DNA of 63,967 nucleotides, the filler included, from Reticulomyxa filosa (Eukaryota; Protista; Foraminifera), in NCBI GenBank assembly GCA_000512085.1. It is 25 parts of 25 records of this genome, joined end to end, with 100 filler letters (N's around TTAATTAATTAA, not from the genome) between each part and the next. Parts side by side here need not be neighbours in the genome. Positions count along the whole stretch, not along the records: positions 6,682 to 16,661 come from ASPP01006979.1; 24 more parts are not named here. One strand, given 5' to 3'. Under the pieces are notes generated by a model. The model made no database searches and was not told where the DNA came from. It saw nothing but the letters and a program-made list of their open reading frames with translations. Shown piece by piece: positions 1,353-16,761 of this stretch. Made by a program: the position numbers and the translations under genes. Position 1 is the first letter of the stretch. Each line of letters opens with the position of its first letter.

Positions 1353-1686
1353 ATAAAAAACTTACCCTGCTAAATTCGATATTATAAATTTACACTTTGA
1401 TATTGAATACGCTAAGTTAACTACCAAATGTTAACATATTTATGAATGAAAGCGATGCTTAACCTGATCTTTTCAAATACAGATTTGTTTATATTATCGC
1501 TTTGTTCTTTCTTTATTATAATAATTGTAAGGAAGATTTTTTTAAGCGCATCGGTTATATACTATTATATCATTTATGCTTAATGATAGTATTTAGTGTT
1601 ACCGTTATCGATGGTGGTGTCCAAAACTTTGATTATGAATTATTAGAAAATTTATTGCCCTAGAGAAAAGCAATACTCTTGAGCAA

Positions 1687-1908
1687 GTGAAGAATAATCC
1701 TGATAATTATGACCAAAATTTGCAATTTGTTTTAAAAAATTATCATAATTCAGATGAGTTTAGAGATTATATTAAACAATATGATGCCGGCGTAGATAGA
1801 GCAGAAGCTGCATGTATAGGCTGGCTATTTGTGATTATATCTGAGATTTTATTAGCATTTGTAGGATTATTAACTTTGGCAGCGAATAGAATCAAGAAAT
1901 CTAAATAA
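1687..1908 (+). CDS. Small hypothetical membrane protein, probably the 3' remnant of a longer disrupted ORF starting near 1446
   Basis: C-terminal hydrophobic helix; hydrophobic coding-like sequence upstream is interrupted by stops. Confidence 0.35.
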   Translation: MKNNPDNYDQNLQFVLKNYHNSDEFRDYIKQYDAGVDRAEAACIGWLFVIISEILLAFVGLLTLAANRIKKSK

Positions 1909-1988
1909 TATGGGTAAAGTAAACTCAAAATGAGCTTTATATAAGCTTATAAATACGCTATAATTTTAGCTAAATTTACATACAGGGT

Positions 1989-2528
1989 ATGGCGTTGAAA
2001 ACTTTTTTAGAATTATTTCCCTTAATCATATTTTTCTTATTATATAGTAAATTTGGAATCATCCAAGCTACGGGGGGGTTAATGATTGCTTCGCTTATAT
2101 CGATTGCATTGACCTATATCATTTATAGAAAAGTTACAGGAATGATGATCTTTTCAAACATCGTACTGGTAGTTTTTGGCAGCTTAACTTATTTCAGCGG
2201 CAATGCTTTATTTATAAAAATCAAACCGACTATATTTTATACTTTGATGAGCCTTGTGCTTTTATACGATATTATAGCTCAAAAAGGCTTGCTAAAATAT
2301 GTTTTCGGCAATGCATTTGATTTAAATTTAAAAACCTATCTAAACTTATCCAAGCAATGGTTTTGCTACTTTATTTTTTGCGCACTTTTAAATGAGATTA
2401 TCTGGAGAAATTTCTCAGAAGCGTTTTGGGTTAAGTTTAAGGTCTTTGGTTTTCTTGGTATTACTTTTGTTTTTGTTCTCATGCAGATGCTTTATATTTC
2501 TCGCAATGCTAAAAGAGAATTGCAATAA
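1989..2528 (+). CDS. yciB: Intracellular septation protein A / inner membrane protein YciB (IspZ)
   Basis: 179 aa with 5 TM segments and family motifs ELFPLIIFF, FIKIKPTIFY, LNEIIWRNFSEAFWVKFKVFG; alphaproteobacterial style. Confidence 0.93.
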   Translation: MALKTFLELFPLIIFFLLYSKFGIIQATGGLMIASLISIALTYIIYRKVTGMMIFSNIVLVVFGSLTYFSGNALFIKIKPTIFYTLMSLVLLYDIIAQKGLLKYVFGNAFDLNLKTYLNLSKQWFCYFIFCALLNEIIWRNFSEAFWVKFKVFGFLGITFVFVLMQMLYISRNAKRELQ

Positions 2529-2801
2529 CTTAAATGGCGGCATCCTGTACTCCGCAAAGCCACTGTAAGCAGCGCCAAATAATTTAAATAGGTTATTGAT
2601 TTCTGTTGCATCCTCTAAATCAATATGGAAAAAATCTGCTAGGGAAATAGGTTTATTTTTATTTGTTATCGCAAAAAATTTCTTAATCGGCTTTATCAAT
2701 TCTAACCTATCTGCCATTGCTTGATTAATGAATTGCATTCCTATCAGTTCATCTAATTTATAATAGACTTCTTTCGAAACTAAAAGAAATAGATTAAAAA
2801 G
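2415..2801 (-). CDS. 3' end of a convergent hypothetical bacterial gene (partial)
   Basis: Frame stays open to the contig end and overlaps the yciB 3' end; no recognisable motif. Confidence 0.3.
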   Translation of the reverse strand, partial: LFNLFLLVSKEVYYKLDELIGMQFINQAMADRLELIKPIKKFFAITNKNKPISLADFFHIDLEDATEINNLFKLFGAAYSGFAEYRMPPFKLLQFSFSIARNIKHLHENKNKSNTKKTKDLKLNPKRF

Positions 2802-4536
2802 NNNNNNNNNNNNNNNNNNNNNNNNNNNNNNNNNNNNNNNNNNNNTTAATTAATTAANNNNNNNNNNNNNNNNNNNNNNNNNNNNNNNNNNNNNNNNNNN
2901 NTAATAAAAATAAAAGAAAATAAGAAGAAAAAAGATGGAAAAAAAGAATAAGAAAAAAAAATGATAAAAAAGAAAATAATGAATGAAAGAAAAAAAAAAA
3001 AGAATAAGAACGATAAGAAAGAAGATAATTAATGAAATAGAAAAAAAAAATAAGTGAAAATAAAAAAAATAAAAGAATAAGAATGAAAAAACTTATAATA
3101 AAATGTTATTTTTTAAATTTTTTATGGAAAAAAAATAATGGATGTCCCGCTCAAGGATATCGATCTAGTTAAGTTATTTTTTTATCATTTGTGTTTGTTT
3201 AAAAAAATTGAAATACTTATAACATTATAGAAATAGAACATCGGATTCTCTTTAGCGAAGAAATTGTCAACGATCAAGTAGTTATGTGATTTGAATTATT
3301 TGTAAGAAGTAAGAAATGGAATGGATATGATGGTCAACAATATTATGTGCATTCGATCCAACTTCGATTCAATCTATCCACTTTTGCGGAACACCAACAT
3401 CTTTGACTTTCCAGTGCACGCAAATAACGCGCATTCGTTGTTTGTATACAGCTCATATGATCCTTTAATTTCGACAATACGCTGCCAACGCCTCTCAAAC
3501 GCTATGCTCAATTTCACACATTCACAGCAACGACAATTACACCGTTCACAAACAAAATACATCAAATATTAGTTTGGACAAACTGCTCTTCCAAGGCATT
3601 TTTGGAAGTGTTTCAAATTGAGTTCCATTGGACCATATTTGTCCAAACAGTCCAGCTGCATTTATTTTCGAACATGGGACAGATTCGTCAATCTCGAGCA
3701 AGTATTACAAAGTGTTGATACACTTACAGTAAATTCGAACAAATATTCCATATTTCGATAGCTGCATGATTATGAGTTGAACATGGCATCCAAGATCAAA
3801 TCGTAAGTGGCCAAATATCGCATCAAAAGAAGAAAAAGACCAGCCAGTTGAATTAAATGGGACAAGTAGTTACCTATCTCTTTCTTTAATAATATACAAT
3901 TAGTGTGTTATCCTGTATATGTACATAAATAGATCTGAAATAACAAAAAATATTGTCCAGAAGAAATCGTTAGTAGTTATGAACAATTTGCCCAAATTTG
4001 AGTCTGTATATTATACGTGGTCATGTTTTGGTTATATTTACACTATCTATGATCAATATGAGCATCCCCAATAAATTGTGCTAATCAAAAAATTAACTTA
4101 TTAACATAGCTGGTAGACAAATAAATTGGGATCAGGTTCAGTAATCTTGGAATTGGCTCCACAAATGGTCAATTAAAATATGAGAAGAAATCTACAATTG
4201 AATTGCCAAATCTTAAAATGTAATCCGTGTCACGAGTCACCACCGAGGGCCGATACGATATTGATCCAATCTATTGACAAAGTGCAGTACAATTATGTTG
4301 TCATCAAACTCGATCTCTTTTGATATATTGTGATTACAATTCAAAAGTGGATTAATTTGTGGTAAGCTCACAAGTCAATCCACGTAATTCATAATACATC
4401 AACCCAAGAAAATAACTTTACCAGAGTTGTGATGAANNNNNNNNNNNNNNNNNNNNNNNNNNNNNNNNNNNNNNNNNNNNTTAATTAATTAANNNNNNNN
4501 NNNNNNNNNNNNNNNNNNNNNNNNNNNNNNNNNNNN

Positions 4537-7810: not shown

Positions 7811-8996
7811 ATGGTGGACCTCTATATATATTTAGATGATTGGAAATATTTTCATGAAAAATGAATACACTGTGTTGACAGAGGTTCGTGATTCAAAGAG
7901 TGTCAAGAGCTTCGGTGACCGTGGAAAGCAAAGTAATATCTTCCATTGAACGAGGTTTGATGATATTGGTTGGAATAACTCAAGACGACAAAGAATTGCA
8001 CGCCAAAAAACTGTGTGTTTTTTTTTTTGGTTCAAATGATGACTTTTATAAATTTGTATCTTCGCTTAGCAATAGCACGAACGTCTCTTATTATTTTTAA
8101 AAAAAACAGAGTAAATAAGGTGTTAAATATGCGATTATGGCCAGATGCCGAACAACGCCCATGGAAAACAAGTATTGTTGATCAACAATACAAAATACTA
8201 TTTGGTGAGATCCGAATTTATATAATATATATATCTACTCTTTCTTCTCTACTTCTTTTTTTTTTTTATAAATATGATTGTATAGTGAGCCAATTTACGT
8301 TGTATGCAAGGATGAAAGGAACAAAGCCAGATTACAGTCATGCAATGAATCCAAAAGATGCAAAGGGTTTGTACGATAAATTGCTGGAAATTGCAAGGCA
8401 GGAATATGCACCAGACAAAATTGCAGGTTTTTTTAATAAATAAATGACATTAAAAAAAAACAACACTTTTTCTACACAAACAATTTGGTGACTGTTTCAA
8501 AAGATGGGGAATTTGGAGCTTTTATGAATGTCGATCTATGCAATGATGGACCTGTGTAATACTTTCTTTTTTTTTTTTTCATTTATTTTTGTTGCTTGTT
8601 GTTTCTTTAATGACTGTCGCTTTCATTTTGGTTTGGTGGTGTATGTGTCCATATATACCTGAAAACTTCAGAACCATTTGCATAGACACTGATTCAGATG
8701 GACCGACCAGACAAACGAAAGATCCCAATTCCAAACGATCACAAGCCAAAGAGAACAAAAAAAAAGAAGGCAAAGATAATGATACTGACACAATTCCCCA
8801 AAATAAATCCAAAGTAAAACACACCAATCCTATTAATACTCATCATGCTCAAAAAAACTCGGAGTCCACTTTATCATCTCAATCCACTAATGAGAAAGTA
8901 CATGATGTTCAAAAGCTTAATGATATATCACAAACTTGTCCACAACAAAACTCTGATTTTAGATTGAGAGAATGGCACCCATTGTCAACCTTTTGA
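7811..8996 (+). CDS. DTD1: D-aminoacyl-tRNA deacylase; exons 7811-7813, 7882-8012, 8110-8204, 8286-8426, 8504-8555, 8672-8996
   Basis: Spliced product MRFVIQRVSRASVTV...VSQFTLY...KGTKPDYSHAM...GEFGAFMNVDLCNDGPVTICID. SQFTL and Gly-cisPro (GP) motifs are present, and all five introns are GT-AG and in phase. Confidence 0.93.
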
Positions 8997-10121: not shown

Positions 10122-12047
10122 ATGGAAGTGATTCCATTTTCATTTGCCTCACCCTGCAGCAGCGAGAGATGGCACCAAAATCGACGACGATTGTTGGAAG
10201 GCGAGGCCAAAAGCGACACAGACCTGCAAGCAGACGAAGAAGCAGCATTACAACAAAGGTTAGCAAATGACATGGTGCGAACGATTCAATTTCTGTGGTT
10301 CTTTGGAATATTCTCGGTTATTTTTTGTGGCTTATCTTTCGTGGTCTATCAAAAGCCTAACGACACGCCACAGGGACAAAGTTTGGTTTCAAAAATTCGA
10401 CGAGCGCCATTCCTGGGATGGTTCTTTCGTCAGCCTTACGGACATCGGCTGTCCTCCACCGCTGCAGATACTGAATTAGTGCCACTGACCAAGAATGACA
10501 TCCAAATCATCACAGGTTTGTGTTTTTTTTTTTGTTGTGTGTGCGTCTATGCAATATTTCGGTATAACTTTCCCTAAAAAAAAAAAACTCACCTATGTCA
10601 CATTTAATTTTTTTTTTTTTTTTTTAAATGCGATTGTGCGATTCCTAAAAAAAAAAAAAGCAAACTTTTTTTAAACCCATATTGAATCTTAGTTTGATGA
10701 TTGATATGCGGGGGGGGGGGTGATAAAAAAAAAAGATTCAAAAGGAACGACAGCAGAACGCAAAGTTCATGGCAGTGGAGAAGAAAAAACAATGGAAGAC
10801 ACCTCGAATGAGAAGCATCGCGGAGCCAGAGGTGGGAAACGTGGCGCGGCCGATGGGCCAATGAAACCTGGTGCATATTTGGTGAATAATTCACCGCAGC
10901 TGACGCTGTTGTGCTGTGGGGTGTTGCTGTTGCTGGCGTATTTGGTATGGGGCTTCTTCCAAGAGAGGATAATGGCTCATCCTTATGGCGACCCCAATGA
11001 CGAAAAAAATTGGTTCAAATCGTCCGAGTTCTTGGTATTGGTCAATCGAGCCTTTGGGTTGTTGGTTAGTTCAATAGTCATTCGATACACCAAAGGAAGT
11101 GGCTTTGATTGTCCTCCTTACTATTACGGCATGTCTGCCTTGAGCAACATGTCAAGTAGTTGGCTTCAATACGAGTCCTTGCATTACGTCACCTTTCCTG
11201 TCCAAACTGTGTTCAAGTCAGCGAAGGTACTCGTCACCATGCTCGTCAGCACTTTGATGGGAAAAAAAAATACTTGGGATCAATACTTGAGTGCAATACT
11301 CACTGGAGTTGGGGTGTACCTTTTTCTTTCTTCACAGGTAATTGTACTTTTTTTTTTTTTTTTGTATATGTATGTACATAAAAAAAAAAAAAGGGGGAGG
11401 GAGGAGGGACGAAAGAAAAAAAAAGTTCAACAACAACAACAAAAAATTCAATAATGTGCTTTGTTTAATTAATATGACAGAGAGAAGAAGGAGAAGAACG
11501 TGATATGGGATGGTATTTTTACTTAGGATTGGTGTTGGTGTCAGGCTATGCTTTGACAGATGCGTTCACTAGCAACTGGCAACAAAAGGTATTCCATGAA
11601 ACCAAAGTGTCTTCTTTTGAAATGATGCAAGGCACAAATGCTGTCACTTTTGCTGTTTCGGTTATCTTTGCATTGCCTTCTATTCCTGAAATTTTGGAAT
11701 TTTATGTTGCACATCCACTAATTATTAGCCATTCACTTATGGTGGGATTAACTGCTGGATTTGGTAATCTATATATGTATTCTTTTTTTGCCTTACAATA
11801 TTTGCATAAATATTTTGGATTTATTTGTTTTTTTTTTTTTGAAAAAAAAAAAAAAAAAGGGCAAATTCTTATTTATTTTACCGTTGAAAACTTTGGTGCC
11901 GTAAAGTTAGCAACTGTGATGACAACAAGAATGGTTGTCTCGGTTTTGCTGTCGATCATCTATTATGGCCATCCTGTAAGTATGACAGGAGTTTTAGGGA
12001 TGTTTATAACCTTTGGAGGATTGTTTTATGGCATTTTGTTCAAGTAA
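10122..12047 (+). CDS. SLC35B2: UAA-family nucleotide-sugar/PAPS transporter, PAPST1/SLC35B2-like (multi-exon; 5' end uncertain, possibly ATG at 9952)
   Basis: YLVWGFFQERIM, SEFLVLVNR, SSWLQYESLHYVTFPVQTVFKSAK, DAFTSNWQQKVF, GQILIYFTVENFGA, IMTTR-like motif; introns with poly-T/A tracts. Confidence 0.82.
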
Positions 12048-12467: not shown

Positions 12468-15400
12468 ATGATATCAAAGGTATTTGTGACAATTGATTCA
12501 ACGAAATATGAAATTGGATTGACAACTCTGTCAATTCAAAGCTTAAAAGACAGAATAATAGAAATCTCGAAAAGCGACCAACACGGAAACACACTGCTTA
12601 AAATTACGGATAGCAATGGTCATGTTGTTGAGACGGACCAGAATGTAATGGAAGCGTTCGAGTACTATCACGGTCACTTCGCTGCTCATTTTGAGCCAAG
12701 TCCTTTTTTTTTGTATATATCTGTGCATTTTTTTTTTTTGGTAATAGAAAGAAATAGTTCGACAATAAACAAATGATCAAAAGAATCTCTGAGCAAGAAT
12801 GAAGAAGAAAAAAGAAAAAAATCGGAAACGTCCCAAAATGAATTGATTGAACTGAAGAACCCTCTAGTGTTGTTGGCAGGGGCAATGGAATATGAAAACC
12901 AGCCCAATGTGGATAAAATTAAAACTGATTTGGTTTTATTGAAAGCATTATTTCAGCAAACCTTTGGTTATGAAGTATTTACCACATTCGATCCAGAAAA
13001 AAAAACAACTGGATTGTTGACATTGGATGAATTGAATGGATTTGTGTTGAGCCATGGTGTGTCTTGGAGAGAGAGCGCCAGGAAAGAGTCTTATGATGGA
13101 CTCATCTTTGTGTGGTGCGGACATAGAGGCTTTGAAGATGATAGGGACACTTTGGTCACAAGCGAAGGAAAAACCAAGACTTTGAAAAGTATAATAGATG
13201 CATTTGCAATTGACACAAGCTGTTTTTTTGTAAGAAAACCAAAGATATTCATAACAATTGGATATGAAAAAGAAGGCAGTTCGTACTTTTGGACAGCCAA
13301 AGTGGAAGCAAGCAAATTCAGGATAAAGTTATATGGAACAGTCTTGATGGTGATATCTTCACATTGTCTGCATATACATTCGGAAAATATGATATTGGCC
13401 CTCCTGACATGGAAAACACAAAAAAAGGAAGTTACTTTACAGAAGTGTTTTGTCACGTTATTCAAACGAACATTGGGAAATGCCTGGATTTTATTATCAG
13501 ACAGGTTCTTGAAGCAGCCGTGATTGGACAAGCGCCAGAGAGTGATGTCATGCCATACACTTCAACTGAAACAACACTTGAGGTATATTGGACGCAACGA
13601 TCATCACTCTCGGCTGCTTTGGTCCAATCTGACGATGTTAAACAAGAACCAGAAGCGTTGATAAATTCACAAGATGGGTATTCCAATATGCACATCCCAA
13701 GCAATATCCACAAACATCGAAATAAATATTGGAAACTGGCAAATATGGAAGCAACCAAAATGGTTGAAGAAATGATGAGACATGAAGAACAAGGATTAAT
13801 TATTGTTGCCAATAACATTCCTCAATTGATGAAACCTATAGACGAAAGTCTGCCGAAAGATCAACTCCCATTCAGTATGTTGGTCAACAGTTCAGACATG
13901 TACAAGAAAGAATTTGATACTTATTGGGTATGTTGTATCAAGAAAGAATGGGTCATTTTAGATTATATTAATATTGATGGAAATGTATATGTGGTCGACT
14001 GCCATATACAAGGTATTGGAACCATTGACATGCAGGTTTTTGTCACGGATCACGGAAAAGTGGATCCTTGTTTGGAGTTGATTAATCCCTCCATTTTGTG
14101 GAACACCAAATTCCATCATGACATTCCAATCCAAATCCAAGGTCTCATTGACAAGGGACAACAATGCACCGACATTATCCTCTTTGATGATTCGATTTCT
14201 TATTTTCAGCAAGCTTTACAAATTTGCATTGGCATACTTGGGAATGCGCATCCTGATGTCAGCGATTTGTATTCCTATTTGGGAGACAATTATGACAATA
14301 AAGGAGACTATGACAAAGCAATTGAATGCTACGAAGAGGCATTGAAAATTAGGTTAAATTGTTTGGGAACTGAACATCCTGATGTTGCTACTTCATATTG
14401 TAATTTAGGGGCAACATGCTATAACAAACAAGACTATAAAAAAGCAGCCGAACATCATTGCAATGCATTGGATATAAGACTGAATATTTTTGGGAACAAT
14501 CATATTGATGTCGCTACTTCATACCAACATTTAGGAAACTCTTGCTTTAAAAATGGGCAATACGACAAAGCCATTAAAAATTATCAAAAGGCAGTTACTA
14601 TTCGCTTGAATCTGACCGGAAAAAACAACTATGAAGTTGCAAAGTTGTACGATGATTTGGGATCTATGCACGTCTGTATTGGCTCATATCTTAGAGCCAT
14701 TCAAGATTATGAAGAGGCACTGAATATTAGGTTATCTATTTTTGGGATGAAGCATGTCGATGTTGCTAAATCTTACGAGTATTTAGGAGACTCTTATGTT
14801 CATATGGGAGAATACGAAAAGTCAACAGAATGTCATGAAAAAGCATTGAAAATTAGATTGGATCTGTTTGGGAATATACACGGTGAGGTCGCCGATTCCT
14901 ACTACAATTTGGGATATAACTATGATATTCATAAAAAAAGCACCAAAGATAACGGCAAAAATTGTGACAAAGCAATTGAATACTATGAAAAGGCATTACA
15001 AATTAGATTGGAGCTGTTTGGAAATAAAACCAAAGATGTGTCTCTCTTATATCACTGCTTAGGATATACCTTTAGTGAGAAAGGGGACCACGAAAAAGGT
15101 ATCCAATATTTTGAAAAATCATTGACCATCAAATTGGAAATCCTTGGACCAAACAATGGTGACGTTGCTTGTTTATATGGTAATTTAGGGACAAACTGTT
15201 GTGAAAAAGGTGACTACGACAAGGCAGTTGCATATAATGAAAAATCATTGCAAATCAGATTGGAGATTTATGGAAATCAACATATCAATGTGGGTTGGTC
15301 TTATTTCAATTTAGGGTATTCATGTTTCATGAAAGGGTTATATGAGAGAGCGACTGAGTATTTTGGTGAAGTGATCACAATTGGATCATTTAATGCGGCC

Positions 15401-15841
15401 ACTACTGATAACTTAATCACAAATATAAAATATTTCAATGATAGCGATGAACAATTTCAAAAAGCGGCGATATTATATGAAGAAGCATTAAATATTGGAT
15501 TCAATTGTTTTGGTTTTTCTCAGGTCGATGTGGGTAGATTGTATGAACGTTTGGGCAATACCTGCTTTGACAAGAAACTTTATGAAAAAGCAATGGAATA
15601 TCATGAAAAAGCGTTAAAGGTCAGATCAGAATTTTTCGGTAATTTCCACGAATATGTTGCTGATTCTAATTGGAATTTGGGAATTGTATTTGAAACAAGA
15701 GGGGGAAATGATCTTGCACGTGCATATTACGAAAAGGCTTTCAACATGTACCAGACGGAATTGGGAAACTCTCACACAAAAACAGTAGCTACAAAGGAGA
15801 GGTTGATATCTTTGAGTGGAGAAAAATGTATAAGTAGTTAG
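12468..15841 (+). CDS. Multidomain protein: N-terminal Ubl/PB1-like domain, caspase-fold (peptidase C14, p20+p10; catalytic Cys replaced by Tyr), uncharacterised linker domain, about 12-13 42-aa TPRs; intron ~12700-12783 and a frameshift at or just after 13268
   Basis: p20-like: DLVLLKALFQQTFGYEV, YDGLIFVWCGH, KPKIFITIGY. p10-like: DIFTLSAYTFG...KGSYFTEVFCHVI. TPR consensus HxDVAxSYxxLGxxYxxxGxYxKAIxxYExALxIRL. Confidence 0.8.
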
Positions 15842-16319
15842 TCCTTTCTTTTGTTGGGAAAAGTAAATGTATTCTAGCATATCGTGACAAAAGAAAGTAA
15901 TTCATTCTTTTTTATTTTGCAAAGAGTAGTTTTTTTTTTTACCTTAATCGCAGATTAGTGTTGAATTTCGAGCCATTATTTTTGTTATAAAGCATTTGCC
16001 ATTTATATGATATTTAAACAAGCACTTTGTTTTCATTTAAATAAATATATTTTTTCAATACAAGCAATACAATTATTTTAATTACATTAGTCTGTACAAC
16101 GAATCTTTTTTGATTTTAAACTTATGTAGATTGTCAAAAGTTTGTGATGCTAAACTATGTTGTAATTATATTGTTTTAATTTTGTTTTAATTATTTTTAA
16201 ACGTCAACAAGTACGTGTACAACTAGGTTCGAAAAGGAGAAAACAGTATAATCAGCGCTGCACTTTTATTATATAAGCATTTGCTGTTTCTATTTGTGAA
16301 CGCATAGAATTGACCAACA

Positions 16320-16621
16320 TGGAGCCCTTTACAGTAATACCTCAATCCCGATATCATTCCACCTCTCGTCATTTAAATGACCTTATAAGTGAAAACGAAG
16401 ACGACACTAACTTTGGCTCTCATAATAACGTTCGGCATTCCAGAACATCAGAACATTTCCCAACAGTAAATGAGTGCAACAACTCCTATTCTTTCAACGA
16501 CTGCGAAGCTCAAAATGAGGCCTTGTTATTTTCATTGGCTCAACTTATCAAAATGCGTGGAGAGATTAAGGAGCATATTCCGGAGTTATCAAATCACTGC
16601 TTATACTTTTCCCATCGTTGG
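16320..16621 (+). CDS. Probable first exon of a hypothetical protein
   Basis: ATG-initiated open frame ending at a GTATGT donor followed by poly-T. Confidence 0.35.
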
Positions 16622-16761
16622 TATGTCGACTTGTTTTTTTTTTTTTTTTTTTTTTTTTTTTNNNNNNNNNNNNNNNNNNNNNNNNNNNNNNNNNNNNNNN
16701 NNNNNTTAATTAATTAANNNNNNNNNNNNNNNNNNNNNNNNNNNNNNNNNNNNNNNNNNNN

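Follow-up and report, generated by a model that had tools for sequence, protein, structure and literature searches.

True caspases are usually regarded as an animal invention, and the foraminiferan Reticulomyxa filosa is the odd protist that has them. The gene RFI_09245 of this organism raises the question of what kind of protease-like domain it encodes, in what state the active site of that domain is, and with which other modules the domain is combined. The gene occupies positions 12468-15841 on the plus strand of a stretch of DNA of 63,967 nucleotides, filler included (hereafter, the window), which is joined from parts of the R. filosa assembly GCA_000512085.1; its host contig has 9,980 bases, and its product, ETO27891.1, is labelled 'uncharacterized'. 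The main features of the gene had been read by eye in an earlier note made from the sequence alone; many of these readings are revisited below, and all of the note's statements on the sequence that were checked proved correct. The analysis reported here shows that RFI_09245 is one gene that encodes a cytosolic protein of approximately 1100 residues consisting of four modules, namely a PB1-like head, a caspase-type domain predicted to be a pseudo-protease, a middle domain and a tetratricopeptide repeat (TPR) solenoid. The explanation that best accounts for the observations as a whole, and that we hold with moderate confidence, is that this four-module pseudo-caspase gene belongs to a species-specific family and functions as a decoy-type regulator.

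Identification of a caspase-type domain

The exons and frame pieces of the gene were searched separately rather than as one joined protein, and, taken singly, they match no caspase in Pfam (Peptidase_C14) or in the PDB; the link to caspases runs through paralogues and profiles. A word-based search detected seven paralogues with 39-48% identity over the p20-like half of the domain (12843-13268, frame 0), one of which, P0006, scores above the Pfam Peptidase_C14 (PF00656) cut-off (38.9 bits), as does a further paralogue, P0034 (70.2 bits); several paralogues bear the UniRef label 'Peptidase C14 caspase domain-containing'. The same type of search with the p10-like and middle parts of the protein returned a sole match, the product of RFI_09245 itself. 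When a nine-row profile of the family was compared with the PDB, only Dronc was retrieved (E 0.0044), and in the resulting alignment a family column with His or Tyr falls on the caspase His and a column with Tyr falls on the active-site position. A profile of 78 rows retrieved caspase-3 with an E value of 4e-15, followed by Dronc, CED-3 and caspase-7, and the best 60 of its 198 matches at E up to 1 are all caspases. In the profile alignments, the p10-like half (13316-13630, frame 2), which includes the motifs DIFTLSAY and KKGSYFTEVFC, corresponds to the GSWFIQ..C region of caspase-3 and Dronc.

The comparison with caspase, paracaspase and metacaspase folds that the earlier note had proposed was performed on an AlphaFold model of residues 1-384 of the paralogue P0009, which has the same His/Tyr combination as the window gene and is about 45% identical to it (mean predicted local distance difference test score, pLDDT, 83.5). 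The top Foldseek match of this model is c-FLIP-L (3h13, E 1.4e-10), followed by caspases 1, 9 and 6 and CED-3, with E values from 1e-10 to 1e-8. In the VIA comparison, caspase-9 (Z 22.6), CED-3 (22.4) and c-FLIP (21.7) precede the paracaspase MALT1 (19.1), and lower rows are taken by metacaspases (15-17), by legumain, GPI8 and CHAT (13-14) and by the caspase-like domain of Raptor (10.2). Thus, the P0009 model has the caspase/hemoglobinase alpha-beta fold with both a p20 and a p10 part. The ranking of caspases and c-FLIP above MALT1, and of MALT1 above metacaspases, together with a profile for which the matches listed are all caspases, bears out the initial reading of this region as caspase rather than metacaspase, and, with the structural part of the evidence taken from a predicted model, supports the assignment of the RFI_09245 domain as caspase-type (C14A-like), not metacaspase-type.

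Loss of the catalytic cysteine

By HMMER alignment to Dronc and caspase-3, the catalytic His is retained in RFI_09245 (CAT, 13122-13124, within YDGLIFVWCGH) and the position of the catalytic Cys is occupied by Tyr (TAT, 13263-13265, within KPKIFITIGYEK); both codons lie where they had been placed by eye. The catalytic His-Cys pair is accordingly absent from this protein. The residues of the Asp-binding pocket are missing as well: in the profile-to-caspase-3 and family alignments, the Gln before the Cys is replaced by Ile, D-I-G is found in place of SWR, and a shortened loop without Arg follows strand 1, although this call rests on aligned divergent loops and is less certain than that for the Cys. 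Because of the Tyr in the catalytic position and the missing pocket residues, the caspase-type domain of RFI_09245 is a predicted pseudo-protease with a dead site.

The Tyr codon is one transition from a Cys codon, and the earlier note had hinted at a recent one-step lesion of this particular gene. This suggestion is not supported, given that Tyr is the majority residue, present at the Cys position in 21 of the 28 annotated representatives that combine the PB1-like domain with TPRs. The catalytic pairs in these annotated models are His/Tyr (9), Tyr/Tyr (8) and other degenerate combinations, with no His/Cys among them. A broader statement, that no TPR-coupled member keeps His/Cys (0 of 36 annotated), was withdrawn when the contigs showed that the annotated models are split. 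In a phylogenetic tree of the caspase domain, for which the columns of the catalytic pair were masked and the two pieces of the window gene were entered as one row that bridges the frame break by gaps, without any added residue, the main R. filosa PB1 group forms one supported clade (Shimodaira-Hasegawa-like approximate likelihood ratio test, SH-aLRT, 96), within which His/Cys and Tyr members are interspersed. The Cys state requires at least 8 changes on this tree, a rough number given that the tree is poorly resolved. Judging from these sequences, Tyr is clearly not a private lesion of RFI_09245.

A separate feature of the same region is the FVWCG motif (window 13113-13118), in which the Cys two residues ahead of the catalytic His is nearly invariant across the live as well as the dead members of the R. 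filosa subfamily; the canonical relatives have Ser, Ala or Leu in this position.

A family with live and dead members of one architecture

An exhaustive HMMER search with a profile that covers the PB1-like, caspase and middle domains identified 295 representatives (50% clusters) with E values of 1e-3 or lower, of which 107 reach 1e-30 or lower. Architectures and catalytic pairs were tabulated for the best 150 of the 295 representatives (152 sequences), with the proviso that the gene models of this family in the draft assembly are unreliable. The complete architecture of the window gene is present in 29 annotated models among the 152 sequences, and 55 of the 152 combine the middle domain and TPRs without a caspase module. 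In approximately 20 of these 55 caspase-less proteins, a PB1-like domain is found shortly before the middle domain, in several cases directly abutting it, and therefore the caspase module looks like an optional insert.

Six annotated proteins that retain the Cys (five with His/Cys, one with Tyr/Cys; loci L002-L007) were read on their contigs, and in each case further modules lie directly downstream on the same strand, either in a different frame or separated by a short gap. The middle domain was found in five of the six loci (four His/Cys and the one Tyr/Cys) and TPR units in four: three of the five contigs with the middle domain also reach the TPR array, and the sixth locus, with His/Cys, has TPR units only. 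Coordinates of such split models are 1556-4464 for L002 (ASPP01021642.1), 1441-3692 for L003 and 1504-3765 for L004. Among the loci with an intact pair, L002, L003 and L006 possess the PB1-like, caspase and middle domains; the first two also have the TPR array, and the contig of L006 stops inside the middle domain. The short annotated PB1-caspase proteins with intact His/Cys, namely RFI_25175, RFI_15520, RFI_05058, RFI_30807 and RFI_11690, are front parts of longer genes, the downstream middle-domain and/or TPR portions of which have been annotated as genes of their own or left without annotation. Once the split models are rejoined, live and dead modules therefore share one architecture, and the caspase fold that lacks the catalytic Cys in RFI_09245 is found beside intact-pair paralogues of the same architecture, which have a caspase-like ACRG or GCRG motif. 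Hence the tabulation of His/Cys status that the earlier note had called for yields Tyr as the majority state, with intact pairs emerging after the rejoining, and its proposal of a lineage-specific family coupled to active or decoy modules agrees with what is seen, the same architecture bearing intact or degenerate catalytic pairs.

The source was looked up for 24 proteins that possess a PB1-like or a middle domain, and in every case it is R. filosa. The relatives outside this species have only the caspase domain in common with the family; they keep His/Cys, come from metagenome contigs, and are fused to NACHT, WD40, ankyrin or RanBP zinc fingers. One such relative, on the ENA metagenome contig L001 (2735-6016), is an intact-pair caspase fused to NACHT within a single uninterrupted reading frame of 1093 codons; it is flanked by WD40 fragments and a Transposase_31 gene, and the contig is probably bacterial. 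Within R. filosa, the partial PB1-caspase protein P0070 (RFI_05622) contains, after an intact-pair caspase domain, a weak match to a TRAF-type zinc finger (477-513, E 8e-4, below the Pfam cut-off). The locus tags of two middle-domain/TPR members, P0044 (RFI_03651) and P0139 (RFI_03648), differ by three, a hint that paralogues may be clustered locally.

The PB1-like head, the middle domain and the TPR array

The first exon (12468-12699, with the ATG at 12468; 77 codons and one base) aligns with the N-termini of 62 family members and shows 30% identity to the N-terminal domain of P0009, residues 1-78 of which adopt, in the model, a beta-beta-alpha-beta-alpha-beta topology. The beta-grasp character assigned to this exon by eye can be narrowed down to a fold that is nearest to PB1. 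In the VIA comparison, the best matches of P0009 residues 1-78 are Par6 (Z 9.8; root mean square deviation, rmsd, 2.0 Å over 73 residues), MEKK3 (9.5), MAP2K5 (9.4), p62 (9.1), NBR1 (9.0) and Bem1 (8.7), with Par3-NTD also among the top PB1-type matches and the CIDE-N domains next; the PB1 and CIDE-N matches span Z 8.2-9.8, with an rmsd of about 2 Å over 67-77 residues. The family profile of the N-terminal domain retrieves the PB1 domain of Bem1 at a marginal E value of 0.013, over the region equivalent to OPCA. The term 'PB1-like' is a statement at the level of the predicted fold.

The stretch that follows the caspase-type domain, about 200 residues that the earlier note had left as unassigned globular sequence, is a middle domain of approximately 185 residues (13631-14185). 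Unlike the two N-terminal domains, it was modelled from the window's own sequence (AlphaFold2, 91-row alignment), and it folds confidently (pLDDT 82.5) into an alpha/beta structure that comprises a single long helix and then a beta-meander. A Foldseek search of the PDB gave nothing credible (best E 0.44), nor did the VIA comparison with 48,161 PDB representatives (best Z 4.1), and the ESM Atlas contained no credible match either by shape (TM up to 0.37) or by features; at the sequence level, no match to the PDB (by profile) or to Pfam was obtained. Deaminase-like rows at Z 3-4 were discarded as noise. The domain is present in about 90 representative proteins, and in all 15 for which the source was looked up it is R. 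filosa. Going by these sequences, the middle domain appears to be Reticulomyxa-specific, having been seen only in R. filosa, and the analysis thus defines a new domain that is well predicted and has no known fold match.

The C-terminal part of the protein (14195-15778) is a TPR array of the TPR_12/TPR_10 type, with Pfam E values of 6.6e-110 for TPR_12 and 1.2e-56 for TPR_10. A unit-by-unit scan resolves 11 full 42-residue units, a degenerate one (residues 687-729 of the open reading frame) and a partial cap, close to the 12-13 units counted by eye. Among natural proteins with a solved structure, the array is most closely related to kinesin light chains 1 and 2 (E 4e-21 to 1e-17, with KLC1 at 4e-21).

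Gene structure and the frame break

The splice of 12468-12699 to 12784 suggested in the earlier note can be read directly off the sequence: the 84-nucleotide intron (12700-12783, phase 1) has GT at 12700-12701 and AG at 12782-12783, is in-frame in length and contains an in-frame TGA at 12774. In paralogous loci, the reading frame changes at the corresponding domain boundary across a gap of comparable length, for example, from 1795 to 1870 in L002. The second exon opens with a Lys/Glu-rich linker (12784-12842) that is variable and gapped among the paralogues. From there, translation continues in frame 0 to at least 13268, and then frame 2 is open from 13268 to the stop codon TAG at 15839-15841, which closes an open frame of 858 codons.

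A frame-shifted reading, with an indel near 13268, had been proposed by eye, and the position of the break can be bracketed by homology. Every forward frame was scored against a profile of 75 paralogues from which the window gene and its annotated protein had been excluded. Frame 0 (12777-13520) scores 201.5 bits, with good alignment limited to profile positions 79 to about 236, up to the KPKIFITIGY motif, and frame 2 (13268-13720) scores 51.1 bits (E 1e-16) over profile positions 243-337, that is, the p10-like part. Homology to the profile resumes in the other frame, and therefore the break, which has the effect of one missing base, sits between 13268 and about 13316. This interval lies within the variable linker that connects the p20-like part to the p10-like part, and it contains two homopolymers, an A5 run (13267-13271) and a T4 run (13287-13290).

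The GenBank model ETO27891.1 is wrong at three places: it retains the T-rich intron sequence downstream of exon 1; it runs out of frame for about 50 codons and then invents an intron of about 70 nucleotides near 13437-13503, which deletes the p10-like part; and it appends a C-terminal exon that has no support from any paralogue. Many of the public models in this family are split or frame-jumped, and the numbers published for Reticulomyxa caspases and for the domains combined with them are therefore probably underestimates.

A tentative mechanism and alternative explanations

PB1 and CIDE-N domains act by head-to-tail pairing or polymerisation, caspase activation proceeds by induced proximity, and FLIP(L) controls caspase-8 through heterodimerisation. 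By analogy with these systems, we propose a tentative mechanism for the family. The TPR array, perhaps together with the middle domain, would bind a partner or ligand. The PB1-like heads would link the proteins of the family in the head-to-tail manner of PB1 and CIDE-N domains, and this assembly would bring the caspase-type domains together, such that the members with an intact pair could be activated by induced proximity. Members with a dead domain, such as RFI_09245, might pair with the live ones and tune or block their activity, much as FLIP(L) acts on caspase-8. An innate-immune, death-signalling or symbiont-recognition role of RFI_09245, of the kind suggested in the earlier note, may be conceivable. 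The presence of live and dead modules in one architecture provides a testable model for decoy caspase regulation arising outside animals.

Several points weigh against the decoy reading. The evidence for the caspase fold comes from a paralogue that is about 45% identical, the domain of RFI_09245 itself being split by the break. Heterodimerisation and polymerisation would be carried over from other systems as analogies and are not results. Pfam PB1 (PF00564) is unmatched in 63 members, for which only weak matches to other beta-grasp families (GRHL1_C, DWNN) were obtained, and the acidic and basic motifs typical of PB1 can be recognised only in part (the OPCA of the window gene is ITDSNGHVVETD), so that on both counts the head differs from the PB1 domains that it resembles in fold. 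The TPR units are not highly alike, and no tandem repeat was found at the DNA level in the TPR region of the window; because of this low similarity, the hallmark of fast-evolving sensor repeats of the fungal type is absent. As for the frame break, there are 23 homopolymer runs of at least 5 in 2550 nucleotides, and such runs are so common that the A5 run within the break interval carries little weight as evidence of a sequencing error; moreover, two breaks in paralogues (one in L003, one in L005 at about 1552) are not associated with a homopolymer run.

These last points bear directly on the reading under which the break is real and RFI_09245 is a recently disabled pseudogene that yields, at most, a truncated product comprising the PB1-like head and half of the caspase-type domain. 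We consider this explanation rather unlikely, though several points speak for it: the break is present in the only assembly available, big young gene families commonly hold many dead copies, and other loci of this family are broken too (L002 and L005, along with the homopolymer-free cases in L003 and L005). The pattern of lesions leans the other way. The break is single in 3.3 kb of a reading frame that is otherwise open, with 265 open codons before it and 858 after it, and paralogous contigs lose the frame amid continuous homology at A6-A7 runs (2738-2744 and 4291-4296 in L002, 1396-1402 in L005), as would be expected of homopolymer miscalls; an A5 and a T4 run are present in the break interval. 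These coincidences suggest that homopolymer indel errors, or many dead copies, are frequent in the draft genome. The single lesion in 3.3 kb and the breaks of paralogous contigs at A6-A7 runs lend weak support to the view, which we favour, that the frame break in RFI_09245 is more likely a draft-assembly indel error than a real mutation. The frame change would also be absorbed, in an intact gene and a correct genome sequence, by a very short intron, given that GT at 13283 or 13302 combined with AG at 13302, 13308 or 13321 allows lengths of 20 or 26 nucleotides (2 modulo 3) that would restore the frame. This is highly improbable: GT..AG pairs are expected by chance within 50 nucleotides, the sole clear intron of the gene has 84 nucleotides, at other loci about 75 nucleotides separate the homologous blocks, and in L002 the homology is continuous where the two frames overlap, so that an intron would have no space.

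A different kind of alternative places the family outside death or immune signalling, as cargo or cytoskeletal scaffolds similar to kinesin light chains, in which the dead caspase fold would serve as a binding module as it does in Raptor. The relationship of the TPR array to kinesin light chains 1 and 2, the UniRef name 'Kinesin light chain' on one paralogue, the presence of the Raptor caspase-like domain among the fold matches and the extreme microtubule transport of the host organism all fit such a role, and nothing ties the family to non-self recognition. We nevertheless judge it unlikely in view of the intact His/Cys and the ACRG or GCRG motif in paralogues of the same architecture, which argue for real proteolysis, and of the kinesin-binding heptad region, which was not found, Pfam matching only the TPRs; the large expansion of the family and its module shuffling, more typical of signalling and defence families, add a soft argument. 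Under the decoy-type regulator that we favour, a bolder extension can be conceived, which we find doubtful, namely that Reticulomyxa built a caspase-8/FLIP-like regulation independently of animals. PB1-type polymerisation would then stand in for death-fold domains, the lineage-specific central domain and TPR solenoid for the NOD-plus-repeat sensor of the NLRs, and dozens of paralogues would have switched between live (Cys) and decoy (Tyr) states by single transitions. If true, a giant syncytial protist would have arrived at proteolytic signalling under the control of repeat sensors by a non-STAND route.

Comparison with known systems

The closest parallel to RFI_09245 is FLIP(L) (CFLAR), the top structural match of the modelled paralogue. 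FLIP(L) has R315 and Y360 in place of the catalytic His and Cys (PMC7586951). In both proteins, the caspase fold has Tyr where the catalytic Cys would be (Y360 in FLIP), and just as FLIP sits beside the intact-pair caspases 8 and 10, RFI_09245 has intact-pair paralogues of its own architecture. Unlike FLIP, in which the His is replaced by Arg, RFI_09245 keeps the His; its prodomain is PB1-like rather than a tandem DED or another death fold; and it has a long C-terminal extension, consisting of the orphan middle domain and the TPR array, that is found in no animal caspase or FLIP. Given the minimum of 8 changes of the Cys state in the family tree, the Tyr appears to have originated independently of that in FLIP. 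Most annotated members have lost the catalytic Cys to Tyr, the very residue that marks human FLIP(L). Bacterial pseudo-orthocaspases with Tyr/Ser are known as well (PMC6426788).

That caspase-type sequences had already been noted in Reticulomyxa, as the earlier note stated, is confirmed by the relevant passages of Klim et al. 2018 (PMC5982838), according to which Reticulomyxa caspase-like proteins group with animal caspases; in another paper, the part concerned reports the use of the Reticulomyxa protein ETO10778.1 as an outgroup (PMC10959488). As far as these passages go, the published proteins come from the same organism and the same Peptidase_C14 branch as the RFI_09245 family, and the Reticulomyxa passages of the two papers (PMC5982838, PMC10959488) describe no PB1-like head, orphan domain, TPR coupling or loss of the Cys. 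Our literature search found no paper that pairs Reticulomyxa with a pseudocaspase, and no description of a PB1-like prodomain, an orphan central domain, TPR coupling or a family-wide repeated change from Cys to Tyr. The present analysis places the foraminiferal caspase-type domains within a large multidomain family with a PB1-like head, an orphan domain and TPR arrays.

NLR/STAND receptors, such as fungal NB-ARC-TPR proteins and bacterial caspase- or CHAT-STAND proteins, resemble RFI_09245 in the combination of an N-terminal effector-type module with a C-terminal TPR_10/TPR_12 array, and a further link is provided by the distant metagenome relatives of the caspase domain that are fused to NACHT, WD40 or ankyrin repeats. 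The parallel with NLR-like proteins drawn in the earlier note is nevertheless not supported: no nucleoside triphosphatase (NACHT/NB-ARC) match was found in Pfam anywhere in RFI_09245, and the middle domain has no match to a P-loop family or fold. Because it lacks such a domain, RFI_09245 is not an NLR, and it differs from these receptors also in that its TPR repeats are not highly similar to each other.

For the individual modules, the best structural matches of the N-terminal 78 residues of the modelled paralogue are PB1 domains (Par6/aPKC, p62, Bem1) and the CIDE-N domains of DFF/CIDE proteins; we know of no PB1-caspase fusion. Kinesin light chains, the best natural PDB sequence match, also contain 42-residue TPR units, but RFI_09245 has twice as many of them, possesses other N-terminal modules and has no heptad-repeat region for the kinesin heavy chain.

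Other genes in the window

No family paralogue adjoins RFI_09245 within the window. On the plus strand at 7888-8443, two pieces of open reading frame match Pfam Tyr_Deacylase (profile positions 3-45 and 74-125) and represent an intron-split gene for a D-aminoacyl-tRNA deacylase. Directly upstream of RFI_09245, two further pieces (10720-12047, plus strand) match the UAA nucleotide-sugar transporter family (profile positions 4-139 and 160-307), identifying an SLC35-type transporter gene with at least one intron. Downstream, an open frame of 106 or more codons (16310-16627, plus strand), for which there is no Pfam match, reaches the poly-T at the end of the contig and may be the start of a further gene that is cut by the contig edge.

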